Of a stretch of 64,000 nt of DNA, positions 2,341 through 34,154 are shown in pieces. A program made the translations under genes and the position numbers. Where the stretch lies: sequence record PP695294.1. One strand, 5' to 3'. The notes beneath the pieces were generated by a model. That model did not search any database and was not told the origin of the DNA. It was given only the letters and a program-made list of their open reading frames with translations. Position 1 is the stretch's first letter; the number at the start of each line of letters is the position of its first letter.

Positions 2341-3246
2341 ATGGCACTCGAAAACGCTTACAGCGGTAATCCCTTTAATGCACTTGACCTTACTCGCACC
2401 AAGGCAGACCTGGAATTAGCCCGTAAACTTAACCAAACTGTCTCACAGTCCGATGAAGTTCATTACGTTGTTGAGACCGCTGATGTAAAACCGTTTCCTT
2501 TGCCGATTGTTATCGGCGACGACGTTTATGTATACGCAGCCACGTTTACCACGCTGGATAAGACCAACGAGCTAAAAATACGAAACCCAGTCGAACACGC
2601 ATTGCGTCTCGACCAGGCTCGCTGGGAATTGGTGTGGAAACGGAGTAATGGTAAGCTTGCTGCACTGATGGCACAGATGCCCTACCACCATGAGATTTTC
2701 AGCAAATGGGTGTCGGATGCGATTACCCACACGTTTGCACTTGCTCCATATCAAAGTGGGCAAATCAAAGCGTTGGCTGCATTGTTCTCTGTGGGACAGT
2801 TCTATAATCACGTCGAAGATGATGTGAAAGCTTTACGTTTGCAGCAGATGCTGGAGCAACAATTAGGCTTACCTGCGGAACTGTTTGAATCAGTGACAGG
2901 CCACACAGAATATCTTTTCCCGCGTAATATCGCAGAATTCGTCGAAATGGTGCAGGCTGCAGATATCACTCCGCGGGTGCGTGACCTGAGCATTCTGTCT
3001 CTGCAGCAGATGTTGAATACCAGCTTCTTCGGGGTGAGTTATGAAAAACAACTCGCTACTAGCGCCATCGAATATCCGCCTAGTCTCTTCGTTATGATTA
3101 AGGCTTGTCTGGATAATAACATGTTTAACCGCAGTCGGTTAGGTGGGATTGTGAAGAAGTCAGACACCGCTAAGAAACGCGATAAGTTTGAATTCACTTA
3201 CAACCTTCTGTTGAATCAAAACACCAAACCACTGAACATCAAGTAA
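2341..3246 (+). CDS. Conserved virion structural protein (start revised to 2341, 301 aa)
   Basis: AAGGA SD before ATG 2341. The track start at 2179 overlaps the sheath gene. Syntenic with phiKZ gp28. Confidence 0.65.
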   Translation: MALENAYSGNPFNALDLTRTKADLELARKLNQTVSQSDEVHYVVETADVKPFPLPIVIGDDVYVYAATFTTLDKTNELKIRNPVEHALRLDQARWELVWKRSNGKLAALMAQMPYHHEIFSKWVSDAITHTFALAPYQSGQIKALAALFSVGQFYNHVEDDVKALRLQQMLEQQLGLPAELFESVTGHTEYLFPRNIAEFVEMVQAADITPRVRDLSILSLQQMLNTSFFGVSYEKQLATSAIEYPPSLFVMIKACLDNNMFNRSRLGGIVKKSDTAKKRDKFEFTYNLLLNQNTKPLNIK

Positions 3247-3256
3247 GAGGCCCACT

Positions 3257-5770
3257 ATGGAGAACTGGCTGGTCGCTCACGCCGTTAAAAATGCGTGGCA
3301 GCGTCCGTACCTCGATGGGGTGTTGAACATTGCGCCTTTTCGATTAACTGAAAAGACCGGAGCGATCGGGTTTTTCAAGCACGGGCGTAATCCGATTCCT
3401 TTACCGGGCGAGGGGTGGTGGCACGCGTTTGTAATTGACAAGCTCCACCTCAACTACGGCAACTTGAGTATCCCTCCTGAGCGCTGGAAGAAACTTACTA
3501 CGTGTGTAAATAACTTCCATGCGTGGATGCAGGTGTACAACGAAGATGGGACAATTATCCCGTCGAACTCTGTGTATTTCTGGCGGACACTCTCTGGTCA
3601 GATTTACATGGCGATTCCGCAAACGGAACGCTACAAGTGGTTAGACGACACGCCGTGTTATCTGCGCATTTATGCTGGTAATGATGGCGGCGAAAACGCT
3701 CCTGTTGTTAAACCGACGTTCATCGAACCGTATAATCCGCCGAACCCACAACAGATCCAGATCGTCTTAGACCGTTATAATCTGTTGAAAGGCCAGAAAA
3801 TCGGCTATGTCGATTTCTGGGTAAACGGAAAGATGATTGCTGATCCTAAGCCCGCGGATATCAAAGCGTGGGACGATGTTGAAATCCGTGTCGATGGGCG
3901 TATTCGTCGTGTGATTGAATACCGTTGTGGGGATTTGCAAACGTTCTACTCAACGCTTGACCAAACACGAAAATACCTGCTGCACATTCCAAAAGGGGAT
4001 GGCATTTGGATTTTCAACAGCGATTGTGAAATTCAGTTGTTGTGGAAAGGCGAGGGACGTTACTACCATCGCCACCGCCATCTGGCCGTACGACAATTGA
4101 CGTGGAACGATCTATCGATTCCTTCGATGCGGATTTCGAAGTACCGCACCGCGTTCAACACCCCGATGAATGATATCGACGAACTAACGATTCGTTTATT
4201 GATACGCGACGATTTCCTTGACCTGAAGCCGCTGTATAATTCCACCCACACGCATGATCTCTATCGTCTTAGCGACGAGCAAATCATCGGTGCGATGGTG
4301 GGGGCAAACTCCAACGTACCAGAGTGGACCGCAGCAGCGCTCGAAGAATCGGCAGCGAATCGGTTAGCGGCGGCCAAACTCCGGAACATCACGCGCGATC
4401 TTTGCACTGATGCGTACGGCTACAACGCTGCTGCACGTTACAGCGCCGACACACCGCAGCGTCTGGAACTTACCTCTGGCGGTTATCGTGGTATTTTGCC
4501 TGACCTACTGGCAACATTGTCGACTGTATACGAATACGATGCCGATGGGTTGCTGTTAGAGCATCACCGTAATGCAGGCTACGATGTTTACATCCCTCGC
4601 AATCCGGAAGCACGAATCATTGAGGCAATTGCAGGTGAAGTCTCAGATGCGGTGAAGATTGTTGACAACGCTCCCGACTTTGAAATTGAGCCAGGTTCGA
4701 ACGTTGGACTGTGGATTCGAATGGTCATCGGGGAGGTTCCAACTAACGACTACTACAAAGCCGAGGAAGGAACGGATTATACCCGCGACGGAAATAAAAT
4801 CACCTGGACCGTAGATCGGACACGACGTCACCCGACAGTGATTTACGACGACTTCCATCTGTTCTTCGAAGTGGATGTTAAGGTGTCGGAAGGTCAGATA
4901 CGTATTCCGATTGTAGCACGTAACCAAGACGGGCAGCAGCGCACGCTGTGGCTACCGATGGAAACGGTTGAAGTGTGGTTGAACAACCACCCACTGGTGC
5001 ACGGTATCGATTACCACACCCGCTGGCCGGAAATTGTGGTGGTTTGTAAAGCATGGATGGCGGACGGGGATACAAATAAAATCTCAGTGCGTTGTCGTGG
5101 CGTGACCGGTGAACTCCGTATTCCTAAACACGGTTTCGTGTCAAGCGGACTGCTGTCTAATAACAGCCAGTTTGATTGCCGTGACGACAAAGTGATTCGT
5201 GTCGTGGGTGGTGGTTCACTGTTACTGCGTGACGAAGTCGTGTTCCGTGAAGACAACACTGTAGGTGTCGATATCGTACAAGACGGGTTCCCGTACTCAG
5301 TCGACGATCCGACTATTCCGTTACGGACGTTGGTAAGCGGCGATACTTACAAGTTGCGCGACACTGCCCGCGATTTGGACACACGCGTTGAGGCTTATTT
5401 GTCTAACTGGTTCCCAACACCACCGCCGGTTAACCCGGTACCGTTGCCGTATCTGTATCACCTCTATTCGCCAACCCTGAACAAGATCTTGTGGGACTAC
5501 TTACAAGGTATTCTGATTCTACGGGAAGACGATCCGGAGTATCGTATCTCGACGTCACAGCTGGATAACATCATGGAGCGTTATAAAGACCTCCTGCCGT
5601 TTGACCCGGCTTATATCGGTTACGATAAAGCGTTTGTGAAACTGCATCCGCATGTGAAGTACGAAACGGTAGAAATCAACGAACTTGGCTTTGCTTTCTT
5701 AGACCGCGTCAATGAACGTTATCTGAATGGCGAAGTGCAGCTTAATCAGTATCTGATAATCAAGGGTTAA
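3257..5770 (+). CDS. Large virion structural protein (tail/baseplate-associated, phiKZ gp27-like position)
   Basis: 837 aa, GAGG SD, tightly packed in the operon before the terminase. Confidence 0.6.
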   Translation: MENWLVAHAVKNAWQRPYLDGVLNIAPFRLTEKTGAIGFFKHGRNPIPLPGEGWWHAFVIDKLHLNYGNLSIPPERWKKLTTCVNNFHAWMQVYNEDGTIIPSNSVYFWRTLSGQIYMAIPQTERYKWLDDTPCYLRIYAGNDGGENAPVVKPTFIEPYNPPNPQQIQIVLDRYNLLKGQKIGYVDFWVNGKMIADPKPADIKAWDDVEIRVDGRIRRVIEYRCGDLQTFYSTLDQTRKYLLHIPKGDGIWIFNSDCEIQLLWKGEGRYYHRHRHLAVRQLTWNDLSIPSMRISKYRTAFNTPMNDIDELTIRLLIRDDFLDLKPLYNSTHTHDLYRLSDEQIIGAMVGANSNVPEWTAAALEESAANRLAAAKLRNITRDLCTDAYGYNAAARYSADTPQRLELTSGGYRGILPDLLATLSTVYEYDADGLLLEHHRNAGYDVYIPRNPEARIIEAIAGEVSDAVKIVDNAPDFEIEPGSNVGLWIRMVIGEVPTNDYYKAEEGTDYTRDGNKITWTVDRTRRHPTVIYDDFHLFFEVDVKVSEGQIRIPIVARNQDGQQRTLWLPMETVEVWLNNHPLVHGIDYHTRWPEIVVVCKAWMADGDTNKISVRCRGVTGELRIPKHGFVSSGLLSNNSQFDCRDDKVIRVVGGGSLLLRDEVVFREDNTVGVDIVQDGFPYSVDDPTIPLRTLVSGDTYKLRDTARDLDTRVEAYLSNWFPTPPPVNPVPLPYLYHLYSPTLNKILWDYLQGILILREDDPEYRISTSQLDNIMERYKDLLPFDPAYIGYDKAFVKLHPHVKYETVEINELGFAFLDRVNERYLNGEVQLNQYLIIKG

Positions 5771-5772
5771 TC

Positions 5773-7416
5773 ATGGCGAAGATTGCGTCCAAATTAATCG
5801 ACAAGGATCGCGGGTTCGAAGTCTGGGACCCGAGTGAATTGTACGAACCAAACAAACCAACAGGTTACGTACCTAACCCACGCGACCTCATCGTGAACGA
5901 CATGACCTCCGGCTTTGACCGTGTGGTTAGCGTGAACTATTCGGTACCGTCGTGGGAAACAGAACCGTTCGGTGGCGTTGGTGTGGCAAACCAAGACGGG
6001 CGTCTTAATGGTCACTACCCACTACGCTCTGACAGATATCGCGTCTACGTGGACAGCACCAAACTTCCACCGACGATGGTTATCGATGATGCCGTCACTT
6101 TCAACGGTCCCGATATCGACGGTGTGCGTATCCTGCGTGGGTCATCTGTAAACGATGATGCGGAAATCCTGTCTGGTTATTACAAAGACGGGGTTCTGAA
6201 AAAGAACTATCTGCCGGTGCAGACTATCAGTGCGGCTGACGCAGAAACCGTGGTGAAGCAAGCGATTCCTGGGAGCTGCCTGGCCGAAGTCAGTAACGGC
6301 GAAGAGTGTACTTTCCTGGTTTACTCTGACACCGGTAACGTTGTTCAGATCGCCCACGGTCACATCATCAAGACCAATCTGGTGATGGCGCAAGAGACTC
6401 CGTCTCGCACTGTGCTAGGTATTAAACTGGTTTCACCGTTCCTGGTAGACGACAATGGTACTACGCTAACGCTGCCGATTAACATCCCGCTGGAATCTAT
6501 TCCGCTGTGGTGTGACATCCAGTACAGCGACGGAACCAAACGCCTACCTATCGATGGTTCGCGTGTGAAGTTTAACGGTCTGCGTAACTCTGGTGCACAT
6601 GACACGTTTTACATCGCTTCAAATGCCGGTAATGAGTTACCTTGCCAGTTAAGCTATCAGTTGGCTCGCGGTGAAACCTACGGTGGTACTGACATTGTTA
6701 AAGATACAATTGTCAAAGACTACACCGCTGTAACCGAAACAGTCGATGGTGCTTATTCCATGAAGCTGTTTGTGGTTCCGCGTTGGTTGGATGCGAACCG
6801 TGGTTATCGTCTGTCGTTCCTGCTGTACAACCTGACACGCGGCCAAGTCTACGACGCGACCGCAAACATCCAGTACACCACAGGGACTACATTCGACCCA
6901 CTGTTGATGGGTGTGAAACAGCGTCTGAATGTGCAGGTGGATATCAGCAAAGTAAATCCACAATTCCGCGCATTCATCCAGGCGCAGTCTTTCGCCATCA
7001 CGTTAGTGAACCCAGGTAACGAGTTGAATACCAACTTCCTTATCGAATACCTGCCCGATGGGCTGGTCTACGGTAATGAAATTTGGGCGGAGTTCAAATA
7101 CTCTAACGTCAACTACTCCACGCTGAACCTTCGTTGTGGTTGTGCCTCTAAAGCCGAGTGGCTTAAAGCGTTGTACGAGCCGATTTATCCGCTCTACGAT
7201 CGTCGTAATGAATCTGAGGCTCCCGAGCCTACACACTTTGAGGTGCATGTCGGTGGTAAGGTTTACACCCACAGCATCGATGAGTGGTTAAATGAGCAAA
7301 CGGTAGATTATCGTATCGCTCTGGACGATTCGTTAGTTATTCGCTGGATTCGTCGCACTCCTACGGATACGCTTAACCTCGCGGCTACGCCAATGCTGGC
7401 GCACCACATCGAGTAA
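5773..7416 (+). CDS. Virion structural protein (phiKZ gp26-like position)
   Basis: 547-aa beta-rich ORF starting 2 nt after the previous stop; synteny. Confidence 0.6.
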   Translation: MAKIASKLIDKDRGFEVWDPSELYEPNKPTGYVPNPRDLIVNDMTSGFDRVVSVNYSVPSWETEPFGGVGVANQDGRLNGHYPLRSDRYRVYVDSTKLPPTMVIDDAVTFNGPDIDGVRILRGSSVNDDAEILSGYYKDGVLKKNYLPVQTISAADAETVVKQAIPGSCLAEVSNGEECTFLVYSDTGNVVQIAHGHIIKTNLVMAQETPSRTVLGIKLVSPFLVDDNGTTLTLPINIPLESIPLWCDIQYSDGTKRLPIDGSRVKFNGLRNSGAHDTFYIASNAGNELPCQLSYQLARGETYGGTDIVKDTIVKDYTAVTETVDGAYSMKLFVVPRWLDANRGYRLSFLLYNLTRGQVYDATANIQYTTGTTFDPLLMGVKQRLNVQVDISKVNPQFRAFIQAQSFAITLVNPGNELNTNFLIEYLPDGLVYGNEIWAEFKYSNVNYSTLNLRCGCASKAEWLKALYEPIYPLYDRRNESEAPEPTHFEVHVGGKVYTHSIDEWLNEQTVDYRIALDDSLVIRWIRRTPTDTLNLAATPMLAHHIE

Positions 7417-7460: not shown

Positions 7461-9572
7461 ATGATACTGCGAAAAAACGATTGGCGACACTATCCGGGGG
7501 CGATTGTTGACGACGTCACACCAAACGTGCACTTCCTTCAATTCGCCACAACACTACAAGGATTAGGTGTCCAGCATTGGTACGTCCACCTGGCATTACA
7601 CAATCCCGAACTCCGTGGTGTTGATCCGTTTAGCCCGGATTTAACACTCGAACAAAAAGCGATGATTGTTACGGAGTGTGCGGAAAACCCATGGTACTTC
7701 TTCCGTGAATGTGTCCGTGTCCCTGCGGATGGTGTAAAGAACGGGATGCCGTTTCGTCTAGACCGCGGTAACTTTTCGATGTATTGGATTTTCTTCAACA
7801 ACATCGACGCCGCTATCGAGTTTCTCCGTCAGCATGGTAAAACTGTCGGGATGTCCGCATTGCTATTGTGGCTGATGCGCTTCCTGGAGAACTCACGTAC
7901 GATTCTTATCACGAAGGGTCCTGCCCTGCGTGAAGAAACTATCAACAAAATGAAACAACTGCGTAACGCGTTACCGGATTATCTCTGGCCACATCACCCG
8001 GACGATCCTGATAACCGTGAGACATTTGCATGTCTAGCGCAGGGTAACAAACTTATCACCGGCATCGGTCAAAACGATAAGGAAGCTGCGAACGGGGTAG
8101 GCCGTGGACTCACAGCCGGACGCCTGTTCTCGGATGAAGGACCGTTTACCAACAACATCCACCACATCCTCCCTGCTGCACTAGCATCGGGTACCGCGGC
8201 GCGTCGTATTAACGAAGCCGAAGGTGTTCCATACGGCAACGTCTTCGCAACAACGCCTGGGGATTTGGCGACAGAAGAAGGCGAGTACATGTACAGCCTG
8301 ATGACGTCGGGGATTTCGTGGGATGAACGGTATATCGACATTCCGACTCGTGCACAACTGATTGACATGATTCGCAAAGGCTCTACTGCGAAGATTCCAC
8401 GTATCATGTTCTACGTGAAATACAACCACCGCCAACTCGGTACCACGGACGAAGAACTCGCAGATATGATTGCGAACGCCCCAGGTACACCAGACCAAAT
8501 CCGCCGTGACTTCGGTGGTGAATGGACAACCGGTGGTTACAACAAACCGTTCTCAGGCGATGATGCAAGACGTATGAACGCCTCGCGTATTCGGGCAGCA
8601 CAGAAAATTATCTCTGCTTCCAACTACGTAACGGATTGGTATTACACCGAAGAACAGATGCTGGTTAAAATGCAAGACCGCCACATCATCGGTTTGGATA
8701 CTTCCGAAGCCGTGGGACGTGACGCCATTGCCATGTCAATCGTCAACTCTGTCACTGCCGAATATGCCGGCAAGCTCACCGTGAACGAAACAAACGTCAT
8801 CGGGTTTGCGATTCACTTAGCAGACTTCATGATCGAATATCCGAACACGGTACTCATTCTGGAACGACGGTCTACCGGCTCCTCGGTAGCAGATGCCATC
8901 ATACTGCAGCTGCAATCTAAGGTTCGCGATTTGCATCGTCGTTTGTACGTGAAAGTGACCCAGGATTACTCAAGGAACGATGAACTTTACAAAGAGTTCC
9001 ATCGTGGCCCTGTGGGCAGTCCAGAGCGCTTCTGGGACAAATTCCGTAAATACATCGGTTTCTCAACCGACCAGGATAAACGCCGTAAGTTGTATGGTGA
9101 AGTATTTACCACGGCGTTGCGTCTTTCTGCGGACTTACTGCGGTCAGGCGAATTGATCGACCAAATCCTCGGTCTCGTCGAACGAAACGGGCGCATAGAC
9201 CACCGTGCATCCGGTCACGATGACCTGGTAATATCCTGGCTTCTGGCAATGTGGTTACTTCTGTTCGGCAACAACTTAGGCCACTACGGTATAAGTAACA
9301 GCCGACTGATGATGCGCAACCGCAATATGCTCGGGGGCATGGCAGGTGAATTCGATGAAGAGGCTGCAGTCGAGGAAGAAGAAAAGCAACAACAACTGAT
9401 GGGGCAAATTGAAACGATGATTAGACAGAGTCAAGTTGTGGCCGACCCGGTACAACAGCTCATGTACAAGAATCGTATTCAAGCGCTCGTCTCTCAACTC
9501 AACACTGACGTTCGTAACGTCGCATCGATGGAAAGCTTGAAAGAGCTAATCCAACGACAGAGGATGAAGTGA
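7461..9572 (+). CDS. terL: Terminase large subunit
   Basis: 703 aa. Walker A-like RQHGKT, Walker B LFSDEG, RNase H-like nuclease IIGLDTS...GRD and HDDLVIS. Confidence 0.9.
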   Translation: MILRKNDWRHYPGAIVDDVTPNVHFLQFATTLQGLGVQHWYVHLALHNPELRGVDPFSPDLTLEQKAMIVTECAENPWYFFRECVRVPADGVKNGMPFRLDRGNFSMYWIFFNNIDAAIEFLRQHGKTVGMSALLLWLMRFLENSRTILITKGPALREETINKMKQLRNALPDYLWPHHPDDPDNRETFACLAQGNKLITGIGQNDKEAANGVGRGLTAGRLFSDEGPFTNNIHHILPAALASGTAARRINEAEGVPYGNVFATTPGDLATEEGEYMYSLMTSGISWDERYIDIPTRAQLIDMIRKGSTAKIPRIMFYVKYNHRQLGTTDEELADMIANAPGTPDQIRRDFGGEWTTGGYNKPFSGDDARRMNASRIRAAQKIISASNYVTDWYYTEEQMLVKMQDRHIIGLDTSEAVGRDAIAMSIVNSVTAEYAGKLTVNETNVIGFAIHLADFMIEYPNTVLILERRSTGSSVADAIILQLQSKVRDLHRRLYVKVTQDYSRNDELYKEFHRGPVGSPERFWDKFRKYIGFSTDQDKRRKLYGEVFTTALRLSADLLRSGELIDQILGLVERNGRIDHRASGHDDLVISWLLAMWLLLFGNNLGHYGISNSRLMMRNRNMLGGMAGEFDEEAAVEEEEKQQQLMGQIETMIRQSQVVADPVQQLMYKNRIQALVSQLNTDVRNVASMESLKELIQRQRMK

Positions 9573-12980: not shown

Positions 12981-12987
12981 GTCACTA

Positions 12988-13030
12988 GGCGTACTCTCTT
13001 CGGGGAGTACGCCAATCTTATTTTTTTTAT
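12988..13030 (+). terminator. Intrinsic terminator
   Basis: GGCGTACTCTC-TTCG-GGGAGTACGCC plus a long T-tract. Confidence 0.85.
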
Positions 13031-13671
13031 TTTTTTGATTATTTTTTAACCGGCCGGTTAAAGGGGGTCTAGGAGACGTCAGAAAATGATTAAGTGGTCT
13101 GGATGTAGGGTAGCTCGTTTTTGGCAGTTTATCGTTTTCTAGGGTCGGTTACGTGCGTTTTAGAGGGGGTTATGCATCGAGACAGAGAATTTATTTTTGT
13201 CGGGGCGAGGAAATTCAGGGAATGGGGATTCAGGATTGTATGTTTTTTAACCAGTTATTAAAAACGCTCTAGAAAGCGCTAGAACGAGATTTATACCTGA
13301 CCCAGTACACTTGGGTTCCCCCTACCGGAAAATCGCGCCAGCGGGCCGTTGAGAGCGCGAGAGTGCCATTCCCGTTTCGGTTCCGAGGTGACGGTCGCGG
13401 CCGGCGACGACGATCACACGTTGGGTAGCACTTCGTGCCATGTCTGGGTGAAAACTGGATCGTTCTGTAACCGACACACACTGTCGGTTACTTACGAGTT
13501 CTTTGGGTTGTTTAACTCGCTCTAAAATCCCCCTTAGGGGATAATTTAATCTAATTCTCAAAATTTCTTTTTAAAACAATCACTTAGATTGTTTTTTAGA
13601 TTGATCCTGTGGATCGGGTCGAAGACCCTTTCCTTATACGCGTGCGCGTGCGCACACCCGTATCCTCCAGG

Positions 13672-13781
13672 ATCTTTTAAAAGATATATAATAATATTAA
13701 ATATAATAATACCTTTAGGTATTATATTTAATTATTATAATTATTTATATAAATAAATATATTAATATATTAAGATCTTAA
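13672..13781. other. Extremely AT-rich element built from chained palindromes (candidate replication origin / DNA unwinding element)
   Basis: Perfect palindromes at 13672-13685, 13741-13756, 13756-13771 and 13770-13781; hairpin 13706-13725; flanked by ACGCGTGC boxes. Confidence 0.6.
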
Positions 13782-13869
13782 AACGCGTGCAGGCGCGCGC
13801 GTGATCCTTATTAAGAGATCGTGATCGGACGGAAGTCCTAGTTTGGGTACCCTGTGTATTTTTTACGTG

Positions 13870-13997
13870 GTTTCCCTATCGTGTGTTCAGACCACCACAC
13901 GACGTCCAAAACCCATAGCTTCGGTGGCCGCCTCCCTGGACGGCAGACTCTGACAAGTCGACCCACACCACCAACCCGTCCGGGGACGGATTTTTAT
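13870..13997 (+). ncRNA. Putative small structured RNA ending in a terminator
   Basis: Hairpins CGTGTG/CACACG and GCCG/CGGC; terminator CCGTCC/GGACGG plus TTTTT; no credible ORF. Confidence 0.35.
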
Positions 13998-14017
13998 TCC
14001 AACGACAAGCTCCACGA

Positions 14018-14093
14018 AAATCCCCGCAGAGGGACTCACTGCTGTGTGACTCACCGGCTCCTGGACGCCTACGCCTCGAGCCGGTAATTTTTT
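14018..14093 (+). ncRNA. Putative small structured RNA or terminator
   Basis: ACCGGCTC (14053-14060)/GAGCCGGT (14078-14085) stem plus TTTTTT, with small upstream hairpins. Confidence 0.35.
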
Positions 14094-14109
14094 GATTACG
14101 TGAGTTTGT

Positions 14110-14690
14110 TGTTATATGCGAATAGCGATTGACCGCGCCAATGGTCCAATCACTTTTAAACCCTGCACGCTAGGGCTCCAAGTCCTGGGACTGATACCCA
14201 GGACGCTTTTTCGAAAATACCTACCGTGGTGTCTTCGACAAAGCGCAATCTAACACTGCGTGATTTATTATGTTCTGGAAAACTTTCGCCGTGGAACAGA
14301 ACCGGTGAGCGTCGGCGGGGATTCCGACAATCACCACCCATTCAGGTACTCGGTAAATAACCGACCTGCCGACGGTGCTACGTCGGGCGTAGTTCGGTTT
14401 GCGAGAGTGTCGAGAAAGTCGACTGCGCACCCATGACAAAATCCGAGTTGACCGTGGCAGCGCCAGAGGACTGGGCAGCGGAGAGACGTCGTTGAACTTA
14501 CCTCCGATAGTTATCGCTGATTCCGCTCTGGCGTCGGGCCAAAACTGATTCGAATTCGGCGTTGCGTCGAAAAGGGGTCTGCGTGTAGAACCGCAGACTT
14601 GGGGGATAACTCCAAAGTGGGGTGATCGGATCTTGACGGCTCGGAATAGACGAGAGGGGCGGGTACTCCCGTTGAGAAACGACGGTACCT
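14110..14690 (+). ncRNA. Putative large (~580 nt) multi-domain structured ncRNA
   Basis: No SD-supported ORF. Nested helices 14442-14449/14638-14645, 14461-14468/14526-14533, 14182-14189/14197-14204 and 14577-14583/14592-14598. Confidence 0.6.
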
Positions 14691-14698
14691 GGCTGATT

Positions 14699-14707
14699 AA
14701 AATTTAC
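14699..14707 (+). promoter_or_regulatory. AAAATTTAC middle-promoter-like motif
   Basis: 44 nt upstream of the ATG at 14751; recurrent motif. Confidence 0.55.
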
Positions 14708-14750
14708 AGATTCTGCGTGAGGTATGATAAACCAAACGGAGAATTAAACC

Positions 14751-15326: not shown

Positions 15327-15814
15327 CGACGATAGCGTTCGATGGAAAAGTCTTAGCTGCTGACGGCCAGTTAACCCGTGGGTCGAATATCTGCAACCTG
15401 AATACCCAGAAGTTATTCGTCTGCCCTTCTGACGAGGAATGGTGGATTACTGGTGAACGGATTGTGGCGTTCGGAGTAAGCGGCGACATCACAGGACAAT
15501 TGGCCCTGCTGGAAACTATCCGCTTGAGACCTGGTTACAAGGGGTTAACGCAAAGCTCGCAGTTACCTGCGAAGATGGATTTTACTTTCCTGATGCTTTT
15601 GGCCTCAGGAAAAGCGATAGTCGGCGGAAAACGTGAAGACGACGTGACGTTGTGGTGGAGTGAAGCCACACCACCTCTGGCAACCGGAAGCGGTTACGAG
15701 TACGCGTTGGGTGCGATGAAGATGGGCGCGAATGCGGTTCGTGCTGTTGAGATTGCGTCCGAATGCGATATCTACACCGGTGGTGAGATTAGCACTTACG
15801 AACTACGGAGGTGA
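15323..15814 (+). CDS. Ntn-hydrolase, HslV/proteasome beta-type threonine peptidase (start revised to 15323, 163 aa)
   Basis: ATGA overlap with the upstream gene. N-terminus M-TTIAFDGKVLAADGQ.T; conserved K in QKL; ATGSG; DIYTGG. Confidence 0.8.
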   Translation: MTTIAFDGKVLAADGQLTRGSNICNLNTQKLFVCPSDEEWWITGERIVAFGVSGDITGQLALLETIRLRPGYKGLTQSSQLPAKMDFTFLMLLASGKAIVGGKREDDVTLWWSEATPPLATGSGYEYALGAMKMGANAVRAVEIASECDIYTGGEISTYELRR

Positions 15815-15907
15815 ATCATGCGGGAGTCAGAAGCACGCAAGCTTGACCCCATCAATCGCCTGCGATAACGGGGTAGCGCATCCGTATAAACACGTTTAAA
15901 GAATTCT

Positions 15908-15983
15908 GGGGGTATGGCGCAATTGGTAGCGCACCGGTCTCCAAAACCGAAGGTTCGAGGTTCGAAACCTCGTGCCCCCGCCA
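15908..15983 (+). tRNA. trnW: tRNA-Trp(CCA)
   Basis: 76-nt cloverleaf: acceptor GGGGGUA/UGCCCCC, anticodon loop CU-CCA-AA, T-loop UUCGAAA, encoded 3' CCA. Confidence 0.93.
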
Positions 15984-16047
15984 CATTTAGCCAACGAATT
16001 CAGGTTCAACACAGAAGACACAGATTTGTCAACTGTTGGAGAACAAC

Positions 16048-16290
16048 ATGAATTTGTACTTGCTAGAACGAACTGACGATATCGGGTATGATGAATTTGA
16101 TTCCATAATCGTGGCGGCTCCTACGGAGCAAGCCGCGTGTGCAATTCCTCCCGACCGTGGTTATTGGATGGACTGCCGCTGGTTACCGAAAGAGCGCTGG
16201 GATGAAGGGCTTACCCTGACCGTTACTCTTATCGGCACTACGCACTATCCTGCTGGGACCGTCGTTCATGAATCGTTCAATGCTGGCTAA
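16048..16290 (+). CDS. Small hypothetical protein (80 aa), paralog of the 14751 domains
   Basis: GGAG SD before ATG 16048; MNLYLL...SIIVAAPTEQAA. Confidence 0.7.
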   Translation: MNLYLLERTDDIGYDEFDSIIVAAPTEQAACAIPPDRGYWMDCRWLPKERWDEGLTLTVTLIGTTHYPAGTVVHESFNAG

Positions 16291-16292
16291 AC

Positions 16293-16310
16293 AGTGGGCT
16301 TCGGCCCACT
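16293..16310 (+). other. cUUCGg hairpin with no U-tract at the start of the ncRNA array
   Basis: AGTGGGC-TTCG-GCCCACT. Confidence 0.6.
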
Positions 16311-16321
16311 AACCCTATTCG

Positions 16322-16470
16322 AGCCATGATACTTACTCAGATTGTGCGGGTTGATGTCCCGCATGAGCCGGTAGCAGCTCAGACCTACGGTAAACCGATA
16401 AATCCGTAGCAGCCAGGTACACAAAGCACCAGGTCGCTTGTACAGGATGCTGGGTATCTGACCGGTCATA
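16322..16470 (+). ncRNA. Putative structured ncRNA A (~150 nt)
   Basis: Helices TGCGGG/CCCGCA, TCAGA/TCTGA (16379/16457), CTACGG/CCGTAG, CAGC/GCTG and CCGGT/ACCGG. Confidence 0.5.
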
Positions 16471-16565
16471 ACCTCATTCGATACGAGACACGTTTATGCA
16501 TGAAATACTCCAGTACATCAGGATGTTGATTTCCAACGTCCGGTTCTGGGTATTCAATCATGTTT

Positions 16566-16687
16566 GGTTTACAGGCGATGGGTTTTCCCGTAAGGGCCCC
16601 ACTTACAGACTGGCGTCTCCACGACAACCGTCCCTAGGGGACAGGCAAGCACCGGCCCATTAAGCCGCCATGCTACGCCTGTAAATC
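16566..16687 (+). ncRNA. Putative structured ncRNA B (~120 nt)
   Basis: Perfect 10-bp closing stem TTTACAGGCG (16568-16577)/CGCCTGTAAA (16676-16685) enclosing CCC-GTAA-GGG, TGGCG/CGCCA and GTCCC/GGGAC. Confidence 0.6.
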
Positions 16688-16691
16688 CACA

Positions 16692-16893
16692 ATCTGATAA
16701 CCGAATGGGATTGAGTTCCCAGTGTTAGGGTGACTGTGTGTCACCGTAGGCGCGGTACCTCATACGGCCGGTACGCCACGAATGTACGTGATAGCGGGTG
16801 GTGCTTGGAGACGCTAAGACCTGACCTTGCGGCCAGGCTCAGAAGAAGAAGTCCATCACCTGCAATCAGAAATGAATTTAGGTTAATTATCGG
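16692..16893 (+). ncRNA. Putative structured ncRNA C (~200 nt)
   Basis: Closing pairing 16694-16702/16881-16893; GGTGAC/GTCACC; 10-bp helix 16794-16803/16854-16863 with G-U pairs. Confidence 0.5.
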
Positions 16894-16934
16894 AAGCGGC
16901 GAAATCGCTTACGTGATAACTTAGTAGTATGCAA

Positions 16935-17320
16935 CGAACAATACCAGAGTGACTTTACGAGGTTACTGTGGTATATGTCGGTGCTCCGGGCAACGTGTTG
17001 CCGCAGATAGGCCCGAGGGAGCTGAGTGCACTAACACACGCCGGGATGCACCGGCACCTTACAATGGGAGCGCTGTCACCATCAGTGATGACAGGAGTGA
17101 AGGATTCGTACCTCACTCGACTGGGCGGAAGCCTGGGCGTTCCCCCATCTTCACATCATGGCCGGCTTGCCGGTTCAACGTTGACGTCTCGTAAGAGATT
17201 TCCAGTCAGGCAACTGATAACACACCTAAGCGTCGACCTTGGACGTATGGTGTCTGGTTAAGTCCCCCGAAACGGAAACCAGTAGGGGTGTGGTACGTTG
17301 AGTGTAACTATCATGATGCC
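16935..17320 (+). ncRNA. Putative structured ncRNA D (~380 nt) directly upstream of a tRNA-like element
   Basis: Back-to-back helices ATACCA/TGGTAT, GGCAAC/GTTGCC, GCCGG/CCGGC, CTGTCA/TGACAG, GAGTGA/TCACTC, GACTGG/CCAGTC, TCTC-GTAA-GAGA and CTGGTT/AACCAG. Confidence 0.6.
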
Positions 17321-17329
17321 ATGAACAAT

Positions 17330-17399
17330 GGCTTTGTAGCTCAGGTAGGTAGAGCAACCTCTTCGAGGAAGGTCGCCGGTTCGAGTCCGGTCAAAGCAA
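17330..17399 (+). ncRNA. tRNA-like RNA with a 13-nt anticodon arm (tRNA mimic or pseudo-tRNA)
   Basis: Canonical U8A9, GCUC/GAGC D-arm, AGGUC variable loop and GCCGG-UUCGAGU-CCGGU T-arm; anticodon arm 4 nt short; G1-A72 mismatch; no CCA. Confidence 0.75.
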
Positions 17400-17476
17400 G
17401 AGCAGCGAAGTTAGAGGAATTAACACCCGACTCATAATCGGATATTTCGCGGGTTCGAATCCCTGCCACTTGCTCG
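17400..17476 (+). tRNA. Degenerate tRNA with CAU anticodon (Met or Ile2; possible pseudogene)
   Basis: Anticodon arm CCCGA-CUCAUAA-UCGGA and T-loop UUCGAAU. T-stem bulged, acceptor stem imperfect, no CCA. Confidence 0.6.
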
Positions 17477-17486
17477 CCCTATGTAA

Positions 17487-17505
17487 ACTCAGATATATTT
17501 TACCT
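17487..17505 (+). promoter_or_regulatory. Variant early (vRNAP) promoter-like motif before the HNH gene
   Basis: CAGATATATTTTACCTAAG resembles AGATATTACCTAAG at 19434. Confidence 0.45.
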
Positions 17506-17538
17506 AAGAGAATAGGTAAACGTATTTGAGAGGTAATA

Positions 17539-18078
17539 ATGAAAGATTTAACCCTACCACCAGGCGACTGGGCACCGTGTCCGGATGCGCCCGATTACTT
17601 CATGGTTTCGAGAAAAGGTGAATTATATTCACTTCGTTCAAACCGTATTGTTTCTCAAAATGTGGTTGGAAATGGGTATTTAGCCCACGTTACAAAAATA
17701 GGCGGAAGGAAAGGTGTTAATGTGGTGCTTAAAACGCACATACAGGTCGCCAAAGCTTTCCACCCTAATCCTGAGAACAAGCCAGAAGTGAACCACAAAA
17801 ACGGTATTAAGTCCTGTAATGAGGACTGGAACGTTGAATGGTCGACGCGACGTGAAAATCACGAACATGCTGTCGAACATGGGCTTTTCTCTTGTATAAA
17901 TGACCATCGTGGTCAACGTTCTCCGAAGATGACTGGAATGGAGATTCGCGAACTCTTAGAAAACCCGAGCGGCAGCCTTAAGCAATGCGCGGAAGAGTAT
18001 AACGTGGATCGTAAAACTATCCAGAACATTCGGAGTAACCCAGCACGTTACTTGTCAATGACATTGACTAAAAAGTAA
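17539..18078 (+). CDS. Free-standing NUMOD4/HNH homing endonuclease
   Basis: Y.VS..G...S N-terminal motif; HIQVAKAF.PNPENKPEVNHKNGIK..N...NVEW.T..EN..HA; C-terminal HTH-like segment; GAGG SD. Confidence 0.9.
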   Translation: MKDLTLPPGDWAPCPDAPDYFMVSRKGELYSLRSNRIVSQNVVGNGYLAHVTKIGGRKGVNVVLKTHIQVAKAFHPNPENKPEVNHKNGIKSCNEDWNVEWSTRRENHEHAVEHGLFSCINDHRGQRSPKMTGMEIRELLENPSGSLKQCAEEYNVDRKTIQNIRSNPARYLSMTLTKK

Positions 18079-18084
18079 CCATCA

Positions 18085-18375
18085 ATTTGTGTTATCCTTA
18101 TCCCGAAGGCATTCGAAATAAGACGCGTATCCACACACGGGTCAAGGATAACACGAACCACTTCCGCGGTCACCGTGTCCATTGCCGCCTACCTGCATGG
18201 GCTGTCCTCCGACACGGTGACTTCGGGCCAACTTACAGGCCAGGGCCGTTTGGGTTTTTCTTACGCATCCATCCAGAGCCACCTCGCGCCCTAGTCTGTA
18301 TACCCCTTTTCTGTTCCTGGTTTGCCAACTAAATCAATTAAGCCTGGTGCGTTGCCCTGGGAACAGAAAACTTAT
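18085..18375 (+). ncRNA. Putative structured ncRNA E (~290 nt)
   Basis: Perfect 11-bp stems 18089-18099/18144-18154 and 18169-18179/18211-18221; 14-bp stem 18307-18320/18357-18370 with G-U pairs. Confidence 0.55.
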
Positions 18376-18458
18376 TCGGTTACACACCGAACCCACCCAC
18401 GAGGGATATGTCGTGGACTACCAATAGAAGCAGCAATAGTAGTAAGAAGGAAAGCAAC

Positions 18459-19280
18459 ATGTTTACAGTTAAACGTGTAATTGATGGTGACCGCATTATT
18501 ACCGAACATGAAAAAGTTCGTATCGGTGACCGTAAGTCTCGTGTATTCCGCGAGGCATTAAAAATGCTCGAGAACGAGCGCTTCGACATCGTTGTCGATG
18601 ATGAAAAGTTAGCCCTTAATCCGGGGTTAAAACGCATTGCCCCTGATGTGCCTGATCCGAACACCATGCTTTTGTCTGATTATTGTAGCTGGTCGCACAG
18701 ATTATATAAAAGTCAGGTTTATGCACACGCGTATTTGCGGCAGCTTTTCCCCAACCTTATTATCCCCGATTTGGAAACGGTCGAGGTGTTTAACTGCAAC
18801 GCACGCGAGTTTATTAGCTACGTGCTAGATAATAAGGGCAACGCTATCTTGGTACTGGCGACAAATTTATGTGAACCAGAAGCCATGGATAGTATCTGCG
18901 GCGAACTCGTTGGTTTCGGTACTCCCCCAGAGAAATTAGGCTGGTACAAACCATCTCCTGATAGCGACATGGCGATCATTGTCTACACTCAGGAAGAACT
19001 GCAACAAGTCGAATTAGAGCCTGGTCCATCTATCGAGTTCACTGGTGTCCAGGAGCAGTCGCAGTGGATTAACGGTGAGTCTGTTGTTACTGTTTTAAAA
19101 GGCGCTCGCCCTGGCGACCGGTCAGTCGATGAACTGATTGGCGCAATGTGCATCGAAGAAGAATCTGGATACGATCCTGATAACCAGATCAGTACCGGTG
19201 CGTTGTACGAACTGTTTTATAAAGGCGACGAAGTCTACGTGGTTAACTCTCACGGTAAGACTACCGACGTCCTTCGCTGA
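18459..19280 (+). CDS. Hypothetical protein (start revised to 18459, 273 aa)
   Basis: AAGGA SD; acidic ORF; followed by a terminator. Confidence 0.7.
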   Translation: MFTVKRVIDGDRIITEHEKVRIGDRKSRVFREALKMLENERFDIVVDDEKLALNPGLKRIAPDVPDPNTMLLSDYCSWSHRLYKSQVYAHAYLRQLFPNLIIPDLETVEVFNCNAREFISYVLDNKGNAILVLATNLCEPEAMDSICGELVGFGTPPEKLGWYKPSPDSDMAIIVYTQEELQQVELEPGPSIEFTGVQEQSQWINGESVVTVLKGARPGDRSVDELIGAMCIEEESGYDPDNQISTGALYELFYKGDEVYVVNSHGKTTDVLR

Positions 19281-32430: not shown

Positions 32431-33798
32431 GTGAGAAAGGTACCAAAATTCTACGGAATATCCGGCCGGTTGGTTAGTCAGGATAACTATTTGTCCGATT
32501 TGCAAATAGAAGCTGCAGCCAAAGGTATTAAACCACCCACTATTATTAACGATGTCGCCGTTAACGGGGATGCGATCGAGGTTGCTGAACTTATCGATCG
32601 CATGGTACAGAACAGAATCGTTGACGAAGAACTGAACTCTGCACCGATTTGTAGTTTGGATTGTCCGGCACCGATCGCGCATCGTTACAATCTCGGTTGT
32701 AAGTGTCCGACGTGTGGCTATGTTGTAACTGAACATCGAATTGAATCCGATGTCTGGTTACGTGCACCTGATGAAATGGGTAACTTCGTCAACCCACGAT
32801 TCTGGGCAATGTTCAATGCTTTCTTTAATAGCAAGTTGAAGAAGTTTGAACGTAACAAGGTCACTATCGAACGTGGTAATGACTTGATGATGTGGATGAT
32901 TGACCCGTATTACCGTATAGAAGAACCAGACGGTAAACGCGCACATGCTGTGAAACGTGTATTGGAAGAACATGGTTTCGTTCGTGGCTTGCGCAATCTG
33001 GTTGATAACCACGTTAGTATCTTTAACATCCTTACCACGCCAGAAGCCTGGAAGGAAATCTTCGCACCTAATCGGCATAACGCCGCTGAAGGTGAACGCT
33101 TACGTTTACAATGGAAGGAGCTATTCGAAACGCAACGTCACGCATTCTTCCCAAGACATTTACCGCTAATCTCCTCTAAACTTATCGTTACTGAGGAAGG
33201 TCGTCGTGGTGTCATGGTAGACCCAGTGTTCACGGGTGCTATTGACGCGGTGAAAAATATCGCGTTGCTCTATACGCGGCGTAAAGCGATCGAACCACGT
33301 TTTCTGATTAGTCGTGCTTTGAAAGCGAACCGTCAGTTAACGTACTTCCACATGGACTTCCGTCGTGAGTCTATGGAAGGTAAACCGGGTGACTATCGTG
33401 CGAAATTGGGTTCTACCCATATCCCGTTCGGTGGTCGTGCAACCATCTCACCTATCTCAGAACCACACGATGCCTGGAAGTTAAAAGCACCATGGCGTTG
33501 GATGGTTGGGTTGATGTCGACCCACATCGAGAACAAACTGCTACGACGGGGTTATTCGTCACGGCAATGTGAGCGTATCGTTGCAAAAGCGGCAATGCAG
33601 TATGACCCGCTTGTAGACGAAATCTTTAAAGAACTGATTCGTGAATCCCCAGGCGGTCTTGGGATCATGGTCATACCGTTACGTAACCCAACGCTGGTAC
33701 AGTTGTCTATTCAAACGCTGTACATCGATGAAGTTGTTACCGATGTTAACCAGTGTTCGCTGCGTATCTCTGACCGTGTGATCAAGATGGCTAACGGT
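32431..33798 (+). CDS. nvRNAP beta-prime N-terminal subunit, exon 1 (phiKZ gp55-like)
   Basis: Zn-ribbon CSLDC...CKCPTC; GKPGDYRAKLG; GGRATISP; LRNPTL; ends ...KMANG at the predicted 5' splice site. Confidence 0.88.
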
Positions 33799-34154
33799 TC
33801 GAAAAGAGCCCCATCGGACGGGAAACCTCTGATGCGTATTCTCCTGAAATGCTGGGAAACCCTAAAGCGTATCTACCAGAAATGGGGACGAAAGTCTGAA
33901 ACAACAGATACGATGGCCTACGCTAAACAATACTGCTAACGGTTGTGATAATGGGTAATCAGCAGCGAAGCCTCGTGAGAGGAACGTTCAACGACTATCG
34001 CTGAAATGCGAGTAGGGGTCCCAGTGGACTTCGAAGTGGGAGAACACCTAAGGCGATAGCTATGGTGAAGATATAGTCTGTGCCTTATCGAGAGATAAGG
34101 AGGGTGTCTTAGCACACCTGCTGTATACGGAAACGGTATACGGTGGACAAACAG
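33799..34154 (+). mobile_element. Group I self-splicing intron, 356 nt, no internal ORF
   Basis: P1 GGUUC-GAAAA-GAGCC with a U-G wobble at 33798; P AAAUGCUGGGAA (33847); Q AAUCAGCAGC (33957); R GUUCAACGACUA (33986); S AAGAUAUAGUC (34068); P3 UUCUCC/GGAGAA; terminal G 34154. Splicing restores MANG-DFDGD in frame. Confidence 0.93.

Follow-up and report, generated by a model that had tools for sequence, protein, structure and literature searches.

Introduction

Large, intricately folded RNAs are rare in bacteria and their phages, and for GOLLD and ROOL, whose structures have been solved, a function is still lacking. Both are large RNAs of phages or prophages and are frequently encoded close to tRNA islands; in some cases tRNAs are linked to the GOLLD RNA itself (PMC5737381; bioRxiv 10.1101/2024.12.08.627333). 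ROOL (Rumen-Originating, Ornate, Large) averages 581 nt and is possibly co-transcribed with tRNAs (PMC5737381). In this study we analyzed a 64,000-nt stretch of sequence record PP695294.1 (Salmonella phage 1252; the window), in which 1.2 kb at 16293-17476 had been flagged from sequence alone as an array of candidate undescribed RNAs. The flagged stretch contains, at 16340-16871 on the plus strand, a real, apparently undescribed and conserved structured RNA with an embedded small gene, hereafter the core RNA, which consists of three folded domains (D1, D2 and D3).

The core RNA resembles GOLLD in being a large, many-helix RNA of phages or prophages that adjoins tRNA genes. However, it is shorter (~530 nt, compared with more than 800 nt for GOLLD), occurs in enterobacterial Chimalliviridae, possesses a conserved, translated-looking open reading frame (ORF) of a kind not reported for GOLLD, and was not matched by the GOLLD model, either in 15500-18500 of the window (E ≤ 10) or in five relatives (E ≤ 0.1). 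With ROOL it shares a similar size, a phage or prophage context near tRNAs, several multistem junctions and possible co-transcription with tRNAs, but it is unrelated in host range and sequence, has the embedded ORF and far more invariant nucleotides than reported for ROOL, and was not matched by the ROOL model in the window or in the five relatives. GOLLD and ROOL form RNA-only, homo-oligomeric cages. By its context, though not by homology, the core RNA would be grouped with these large phage RNAs found at tRNA islands.

Dual-function bacterial RNAs, including SgrS/SgrT, RNAIII/hld and transfer-messenger RNA (tmRNA), combine a folded RNA and the template for a short peptide in one transcript. 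The reading frame of tmRNA ends in a hairpin, as does the small ORF of the core RNA in D2, but the small ORF has its own ATG and Shine-Dalgarno-like motif, the ends of the core RNA form no tRNA-like domain, and no tmRNA was called by ARAGORN or Rfam. Identities as tmRNA, RNase P RNA or a riboswitch were rejected when no model matched (ARAGORN; Rfam in 15500-18500 at E ≤ 10 and in the five relatives). In the MALAT1-mascRNA system, a tRNA-like fold directly 3′ of a structured RNA can set the 3′ end of that RNA through RNase P (PMC13408128). A comparable arrangement, also seen in bacterial tRNA operons, exists in relatives of phage 1252 that have a tRNA 0-14 nt after D3; in phage 1252, however, the nearest tRNA-like fold is ~200 nt downstream, the core RNA does not have a triple-helix 3′ end, and cleavage is presumed. 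Group I introns offer a further comparison, as the 3′ part of the small ORF overlaps a conserved fold, HNH genes lie nearby and GNRA-type loops are present, but RF00028 had no match in 15500-18500, no host gene is interrupted and the locus is fixed.

Conservation and structure of the core RNA

The flagged stretch matches phage 1252 at 100% identity and SPN3US-type phages infecting Salmonella, Escherichia and Proteus at 97-99%. Phage 1252 is an SPN3US-like jumbo phage of the genus Seoulvirus, family Chimalliviridae, and the genera of all relatives used (Seoulvirus, Machinavirus, Erskinevirus and Wellingtonvirus) belong to this family of nucleus-forming jumbo phages. An anchored search recovered a core of 500-565 nt common to all five lineages sampled, and the core RNA was found in at least five lineages across the four genera. 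Seventeen sequences were aligned without fitting to a structure (alignment A1; 64% mean column identity, with long invariant runs). RNAalifold predicted 79 pairs from A1, 39 of them with compensatory changes. Our own count on the same alignment showed 89% of cells paired, compared with 33-46% when the partners were slid, and 46 compensatory pairs, compared with 10-18 for slid partners. G-U pairs were frequent in D1 and D3, which identifies the plus strand, the strand of the tRNAs, as that of the core RNA.

The anatomy of the core RNA is well supported (Table 1). Three of the folded units named in the original prediction (16322-16470, 16566-16687 and 16692-16893) correspond to D1, D2 and D3, and all fold far beyond chance. 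Compensatory changes, which that prediction had put forward as a check, were found in 21 of 26 pairs of D1 and 17 of 37 pairs of D3. D1 consists of hairpins P1 (16342-16366), P3 (16385-16409) and P4 (16415-16459), with P3 and P4 enclosed by a closing helix, P2 (16368-16372 with 16461-16465), that was also checked by hand; its loops are highly conserved. Among 21 distinct D1 sequences, 96.1% of cells were paired (35-44% for slid partners), and the covariation score was 0.690, compared with 0.228 for shuffles and 0.08-0.10 for slid partners. D3 contains an invariant hairpin, P6 (16706-16721), a second hairpin, P7 (16730-16744), and a long closing helix, P8 (16790-16806 with 16849-16867), around P9 (16814-16842). 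In 19 distinct D3 sequences 97.9% of cells were paired, with a covariation score of 0.391 (shuffles, 0.148; slid partners, 0.05-0.10). D2 is closed by a 10-bp helix, P5 (16568-16577 with 16676-16685), that encloses several hairpins, some with GNRA-type loops. None of 200 shuffles folded as well as D2, and RNAalifold, run per lineage group, gave 28 pairs with four compensatory pairs in each group. A conserved D2 hairpin (16652-16668) holds the stop codon of the small ORF in its loop. Two further helices were left out of the model: a three-pair, long-range helix between D1 and D2 (A1 columns 71-73 with 405-407), in which a single pair covaried, and a helix enclosing the whole of D3, which appeared when the sequence was folded singly but was not kept in relatives.

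Table 1. Features at and around the core RNA locus of phage 1252 (window coordinates; MFE, minimum free energy; z, MFE relative to shuffled sequences)
Feature	Coordinates	Strand	Basis
tRNA-Trp(CCA)	15908-15983	+	ARAGORN; Rfam tRNA model, 65.6 bits; syntenic tRNA-Trp in relatives
Small protein gene, 84 aa, PHROG 5444	16036-16290	+	ORF call; tblastn matches in 67 phage records
UUCG-loop hairpin without U-tract	16293-16310	+	MFE -12.9 kcal/mol, z -4.8; kept in SPAsTU and pEa_SNUABM_29
D1	16340-16469	+	Model R1, 114.6 bits; covariation on 21 distinct sequences
Small ORF, 55 codons (55 aa), PHROG 26199	16496-16663	+	Same frame and same stop in 17/17
D2	16568-16685	+	MFE z -3.0; RNAalifold by lineage group
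D3	16686-16871	+	Model R2, 172.1 bits; covariation on 19 distinct sequences
A+T-rich linker with weak hairpin	16872-16934	+	z -1.1, not better than shuffles; conserved only among Seoulviruses
D4, two-hairpin leader (putative)	16941-17056	+	MFE -58.4 kcal/mol, z -5.4; RNAalifold
85-nt non-canonical cloverleaf	17066-17144	+	MFE -37.1 kcal/mol, z -2.9; 30 phage records
Orphan spacer, 176 nt	17149-17324	+	z -1.2, not better than shuffles
tRNA-like element 1	17330-17399	+	Rfam, 40.9 bits (threshold 29); no ARAGORN call
tRNA-like element 2, CAU anticodon (Met/Ile2 type)	17402-17474	+	Rfam, 18.7 bits, below 29-bit threshold; alignment
Inserted cassette with HNH homing-endonuclease ORF (17539-18078)	17483-18084	+	PHROG 59 at 5e-33; Pfam HNH_3

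Within D3, a module at approximately 16749-16777 is exchangeable and occurs in three unrelated alternative forms whose distribution cuts across the phylogeny. Close relatives differ in this module (pSal-SNUABM-04 vs. Machina; Asesino vs. phiEaH2) and distant ones share a near-identical form, a distribution that suggests recombination or strong selection.

Covariance models built for D1 (R1) and D3 (R2) each detected one copy in the window and one per relative. Three further loci, reached through proteins of the small ORF, had D1 before the ORF and D3 after it. The core is also carried by metagenome contigs, several of them of jumbo-phage length. Nine of 63 candidate matches in a metagenome scan were true according to an element profile and added little diversity; the other 54 were not significant against that profile and were interpreted as fortuitous matches to the DNA pattern. 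The D3 motif was not found in 185,579 bacterial and archaeal species genomes, as all 40 candidate matches there failed the D3 model and were likewise attributed to chance. The loci of two more distant phages, Pseudomonas phage OBP and Pantoea phage Survivor, had no match to R1 or R2. Unannotated gaps of 0.8-1.0 kb occur in both (OBP, L094 9883-10921; Survivor, L093 9902-10672) just 3′ of small tRNA clusters.

Some phages possess D1 but neither the ORF nor D3. These are Salmonella phage SA002 (91 bits for D1), uncultivated relatives, and the Erwinia phages pEa_SNUABM_48 and pEa_SNUABM_37. In this D1-only clade, the ~200 nt that follow D1 show 87% conservation between two phages (L095 7792-7990 and L098 2151-2350), with compensatory changes in at least one hairpin, so that a different structured tail may stand in for D2 and D3. 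Two sub-threshold Rfam matches were observed near the D1-only copy of SA002 (L095), one to the Y RNA-like YrlA at 5769-5886 (32.3 bits; threshold 69) and one to a type III hammerhead ribozyme at 9077-9129 (30.5 bits; threshold 48.5).

When 15500-18500 was compared with Rfam 15 at E ≤ 10, the only matches besides tRNA were three weak, sub-threshold ones that we took as chance; the five relatives, compared at E ≤ 0.1, likewise gave only sub-threshold matches to unrelated families besides tRNA. No description of the core RNA was found in the literature, although one of 10,006 unnamed candidates in PMC10690425 may overlap it. The core RNA thus appears to represent a new RNA family that matches no Rfam 15 family. 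The original prediction of an undescribed structured-RNA locus with tRNA-like elements in a nucleus-forming phage family agrees with this result, as no Rfam family beyond tRNA was found and the phage belongs to the Chimalliviridae.

The embedded reading frame

The original prediction stated that the region had no ORF with Shine-Dalgarno support. This was correct for long ORFs, none of which lies in the interval from 16290, where the upstream ORF ends, to 17539, where the HNH ORF starts, but not for the 55-codon ORF at 16496-16663, which has a Shine-Dalgarno-like motif. All 17 sequences of A1 keep this frame open and share its terminal TAA. The frame contained no stops in these sequences, compared with 33-53 in each of the five other frames. 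In every lineage of A1, an ATG is preceded at 5-10 nt by a Shine-Dalgarno-like motif; that of the window is a weak GAGA at a spacing of 7 nt, and relatives have AGGTG-type motifs.

The two halves of the ORF evolve differently, and codon periodicity was seen within lineages in the first half. Within the Wellington group, differences at the three codon positions were 0.166/0.048/0.341 in the first half, with 68 synonymous and 54 non-synonymous changes, whereas values of 0.176/0.105/0.133, with 19 synonymous and 84 non-synonymous changes, showed no periodicity in the second half. These patterns show that the first 25-35 codons are kept as protein, with ~27 codons taken as the extent of protein-level selection, and that the rest of the ORF is shaped by the D2 fold, though its frame stays open. 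A hairpin at 16503-16545 that had been proposed as a separate unit folds moderately well (z -2.4) but lacks covariation and lies inside the protein-selected half, and was not confirmed as a unit.

The PHROG 26199 profile matched the ORF of the window at E 1.1e-4 and its Machina orthologue at 1e-49. Pfam gave no domain in the predicted product, and no structurally solved relative was found. A profile of the small ORF, searched against 5.8 billion proteins, retrieved only seven clusters, the longer contigs of which are of jumbo-phage size.

Locus organization and proposed processing

ARAGORN called a single tRNA here, the tRNA-Trp(CCA) of Table 1, and no tRNA or tmRNA in the flagged region. This is the one canonical tRNA remaining at the locus, and it opens the tRNA region in all relatives. 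In the annotated relatives that were fetched, the homologous stretch sits 5′ of the tRNA array, the order being tRNA-Trp, the PHROG 5444 gene, a gap that is unannotated or contains only short hypothetical ORFs, and then 2 to 15 tRNA genes. The PHROG 5444 gene is the upstream neighbor of the core RNA in Seoulviruses; Machina-, Erskine- and Wellingtonviruses have a few extra genes ahead of the gap. Most relatives have a gap of ~580-810 nt; in those with an additional gene after D3 it reaches ~1.0-1.1 kb. Positions 16343-17058 of the window are 73-77% identical to the gap of SPAsTU and pEa_SNUABM_29, and the core of this segment is ~70% identical in some 25 Erwinia phage records. SPAsTU has genes for tRNA-Tyr, Glu, Asp, Ile and Gln between the counterparts of D4 and the cloverleaf, and tRNA-Asn where phage 1252 has the HNH cassette. 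As these genes are absent here, at least six tRNA genes have been lost from the SPN3US lineage, in which the RNA ahead of them was retained. We consider that the flagged 1.2 kb is, on balance, probably the head and eroded remainder of a phage tRNA operon. The locus, presented in the original prediction as an array of independent non-coding RNAs, is instead one tripartite RNA followed by the remains of a tRNA array that relatives have kept.

A role for tRNA punctuation, in which cleavage at a tRNA or tRNA mimic releases the RNA upstream, had also been suggested for this locus. The arrangement in relatives lends it indirect support, and cleavage itself is presumed. In Erskine- and Wellingtonviruses the closing helix of D3 is followed within 0-14 nt by a true tRNA. 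The model match to D3 stops at 3405 in L105 and at 2737 in Asesino, the very positions at which tRNA-Gly starts, and at 1372 in L023, where tRNA-Leu begins. In SA002, D1 starts 20 nt after tRNA-Tyr. Since the D3 closing helix abuts a tRNA in these relatives, excision of the core RNA by tRNA-processing enzymes is plausible. The core RNA would be transcribed together with the tRNAs or tRNA-like elements and excised by host tRNA-processing nucleases. As RNase P is known to process tRNA precursors, it would be expected to cut where the next tRNA or tRNA-like element begins and so to generate the 3′ end of the core RNA, and the 5′ end would result from trimming of the upstream transcript. The released molecule would then act as a stable folded RNA, probably with its own small basic peptide, and not as a mere leader. 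Ribosomes translating the small ORF would have to unfold D2, making translation and folding of D2 mutually exclusive. We favor this reading with moderate confidence. The core RNA is retained even in phages that have lost most tRNAs, which points to a role that is independent of the tRNAs supplied by the phage itself.

A more specific version, which we offer only tentatively, is that the core RNA is both a large "ornate" RNA and a messenger: a compact particle of ~530 nt, made with the tRNA operon and perhaps oligomeric or bound by its own basic peptide, that is kept despite the loss of tRNAs. Translation as far as the stop codon in the conserved loop would unfold D2 and thereby switch the RNA between two states.

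A number of points weigh against the excised, stable RNA that we favor. We infer its transcription, ends and stability. A scan for sigma-70 promoters and intrinsic terminators gave nothing above chance, and nothing on the plus strand of the region. In phage 1252 the nearest tRNA-like element does not adjoin D3 but lies ~200 nt after it, and the linker at 16872-16934 may hold an internal promoter that, in Seoulviruses, would part D1-D3 from D4 and the tRNA-like elements. Since SA002-like phages have D1 but lack D2, D3 and the ORF, the single RNA may be a composite of modules. Support for D2 is weaker than that for D1 and D3, with 67-94% of cells paired. Alignments A8 and A9 were fitted to the model structure, and the sampling is shallow, covering five to six lineages with an effective sequence number of 2-2.7 in the models. 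Finally, a translated ORF with a Shine-Dalgarno-like motif makes a messenger RNA with structured untranslated regions (UTRs) a fair alternative.

Members of the family are found in phages that infect Salmonella, Escherichia, Proteus and Erwinia, and one of these phages, SPN3US, is already in use as a laboratory model (PMC5105663), so that a well-studied host is available for work on the synthesis, partners and expression timing of such RNAs. An RNA fold that contains a conserved reading frame is unusual and offers a direct handle on how translation and RNA folding interact. Public records, which label the 1.2 kb "none", "hypothetical protein" or with assorted tRNA names, can now be corrected.

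Alternative interpretations

The alternative that survives best, which we nevertheless regard as unlikely, is that the locus is an ordinary small-protein gene with structured UTRs whose functional product is the peptide. D1 would then be a cis-acting sensor or stabilizer of translation of the 55-codon ORF, and D2 and D3 together would form a protective 3′ structure. The preserved frame in 17 of 17 relatives, the protein-like evolution of its first half, the Shine-Dalgarno-like motif 5-10 nt before the ATG in the lineages inspected and the position of D1, which ends 27 nt upstream of the start codon, are all consistent with such a gene. However, D1 exists without the ORF in SA002-like phages, and no alternative pairing of D1 with the ribosome-binding site was found. 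Moreover, the second half of the ORF is without protein-level selection, and D3, at 186 nt, exceeds the selected part of the peptide in size, contains long invariant stretches and has a mean column identity of 71%, compared with 49% for the peptide alignment.

The function put forward in the original prediction, a cassette of decoy or antitoxin-like RNAs directed against RNA-targeting host immunity, appears improbable. A nucleus-forming phage family and tRNA-like elements that would be unable to decode do provide a compatible context; an arms race might account for the hypervariable anticodon arm of tRNA-like element 1, and the exchangeable module of D3 has a distribution that does not follow phylogeny. 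Yet no link in sequence or structure to a known antitoxin or decoy RNA was found, nor any Rfam match. An antitoxin RNA of the ToxI type (type III toxin-antitoxin) was rejected because no tandem array of short repeats is present: Tandem Repeats Finder detected none in 16000-17700, and direct repeats were limited to two short ones with two copies each. As a decoy, tRNA-like element 1 lacks the anticodon loop that would serve as bait for an anticodon nuclease. The helices and loops of the core are also strongly conserved across genera with different hosts, which agrees better with a housekeeping role than with an arms race. The decoy, antitoxin, Cas13, PARIS and nuclear-export ideas thus received no support, and the original interpretation as a whole is partly supported.

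We consider it highly improbable that the core RNA is a ribozyme-type or intron-like mobile element, with an ORF running into a catalytic fold and linked to the nearby HNH endonucleases. The GNRA-type loops of D2, the many short helices around junctions and the 3′ half of the ORF lying inside the fold recall such elements; HNH ORFs lie 3′ of the RNA in three lineages (the window, ~0.7 kb after D3; pEa_SNUABM_29; and L102), and the same genome has a group I intron at 33779-34100. The Rfam group I model, however, detects that intron and is silent in 15500-18500 at E ≤ 10. In addition, the small ORF has no nuclease domain, flanks differ between lineages with no split host gene, and the RNA occupies one syntenic locus at one copy per genome. 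Equally doubtful is the view that the whole region is non-functional debris of a decaying tRNA array, which draws on the six or more SPAsTU tRNA genes not present here, the spacer without significant fold or homologue beyond near-identical phages, the sub-threshold score of tRNA-like element 2 and the loss of most of the cloverleaf and spacer from SPN3US, but which cannot apply to D1-D4, with their compensatory changes across genera, or to the small reading frame; it may well hold for 17149-17324 and perhaps for tRNA-like element 2.

Elements downstream of the core RNA

The original prediction treated 16935-17320 as one folded unit. Our analysis resolved it into three parts, namely D4, the cloverleaf and the 176-nt spacer. 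RNAalifold on seven D4 sequences gave 24 pairs, four of them compensatory, with 166 of 167 cells paired. D4 lies upstream of tRNA-Tyr in SPAsTU, pEa_SNUABM_29 and Machinavirus group A. The distance from its end to that tRNA is at most ~10 nt in the latter two, and in SPAsTU a short annotated ORF intervenes. D4 is probably a pre-tRNA leader. One copy of TATATG, considered as a phage promoter motif, lies between the D4 hairpins (16972-16977) and is kept in Machinavirus group A. No consensus emerged, and the motif is under-represented in the window (10 copies; 23 ± 5 expected).

The predicted fold of the cloverleaf has a 7-bp acceptor stem, a 7-nt "anticodon" loop and a four-base loop in the T position, and is without canonical D and T loops; it gave no ARAGORN call and no Rfam tRNA match at E ≤ 10. 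Genera share 83-95% sequence identity in the cloverleaf, and both its acceptor stem and its anticodon stem show compensatory changes. True tRNAs flank it in SPAsTU and Asesino; in pEa_SNUABM_29 it precedes the CAU tRNA-like element by ~80 nt. SPN3US itself lacks most of the cloverleaf and spacer. The spacer matches only phages at least 95% identical here, had no other match in the window or the loci and none in Rfam, and is treated as a spacer without evidence of function. A 7-base leader, ACAATGG, precedes both the cloverleaf (17058-17067) and tRNA-like element 1 (17322-17331) and is conserved before both in relatives; the stretch between its two copies is absent from SPN3US.

Two abutting, aberrant tRNAs close the region, as had been noted from the sequence; Rfam scored both and ARAGORN called neither (Table 1). 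The predicted fold of tRNA-like element 1 has intact acceptor, D and T arms and an anticodon arm that ends in a very short loop. The Rfam tRNA model skips this anticodon loop, and there is no seven-nucleotide loop or readable anticodon. With so short a loop, the element is predicted to be unable to decode. Among relatives its body is conserved and its anticodon arm is hypervariable, ranging from a very short loop to a ~40-nt insertion. The acceptor, D and T arms are those recognized by RNase P, RNase Z and the CCA-adding enzyme. The pattern would fit a processing handle or tRNA mimic and decay equally well. tRNA-like element 2 has a weakened acceptor stem; its orthologues in relatives score 31-34 bits, and those of pSal-SNUABM-04 and Asesino are called tRNA-Met by ARAGORN.

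Neighboring features of the window

At the head of the region, a UUCG hairpin without a U-tract was confirmed at 16293-16310, where none of 200 shuffles folded as well. It is located directly 3′ of the stop codon of the upstream gene and was found in Seoulviruses only. On the other side, the HNH cassette adjoins the RNA region, is not part of the core RNA, and is not present in Proteus phage 7 or SPN3US. HNH ORFs 3′ of the RNA were also observed in pEa_SNUABM_29 (L005 3367-3903, directly after tRNA-Tyr) and in L102 (3535-4056). As such ORFs occur downstream of the RNA in several lineages, the site looks like an insertion hotspot. A small ParB-like gene lies between D3 and tRNA-Tyr in Machinavirus group B (L009, L011, L012 and L013; approximately 2776-3111), and in that subgroup only.

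Elsewhere in the window, the group I intron at 33779-34100 (a full-length Rfam match of 69.4 bits) splits a long plus-strand ORF that starts at 32431, the flanking pieces of which have no Pfam match. A stretch of ~1.8 kb at 12981-14750 is without an ORF of at least 80 aa and without an Rfam match at the gathering threshold. It includes an A+T-rich dip (GC 0.31 at 13500-13800), and the records of SPN3US and Proteus phage 7 start inside it.

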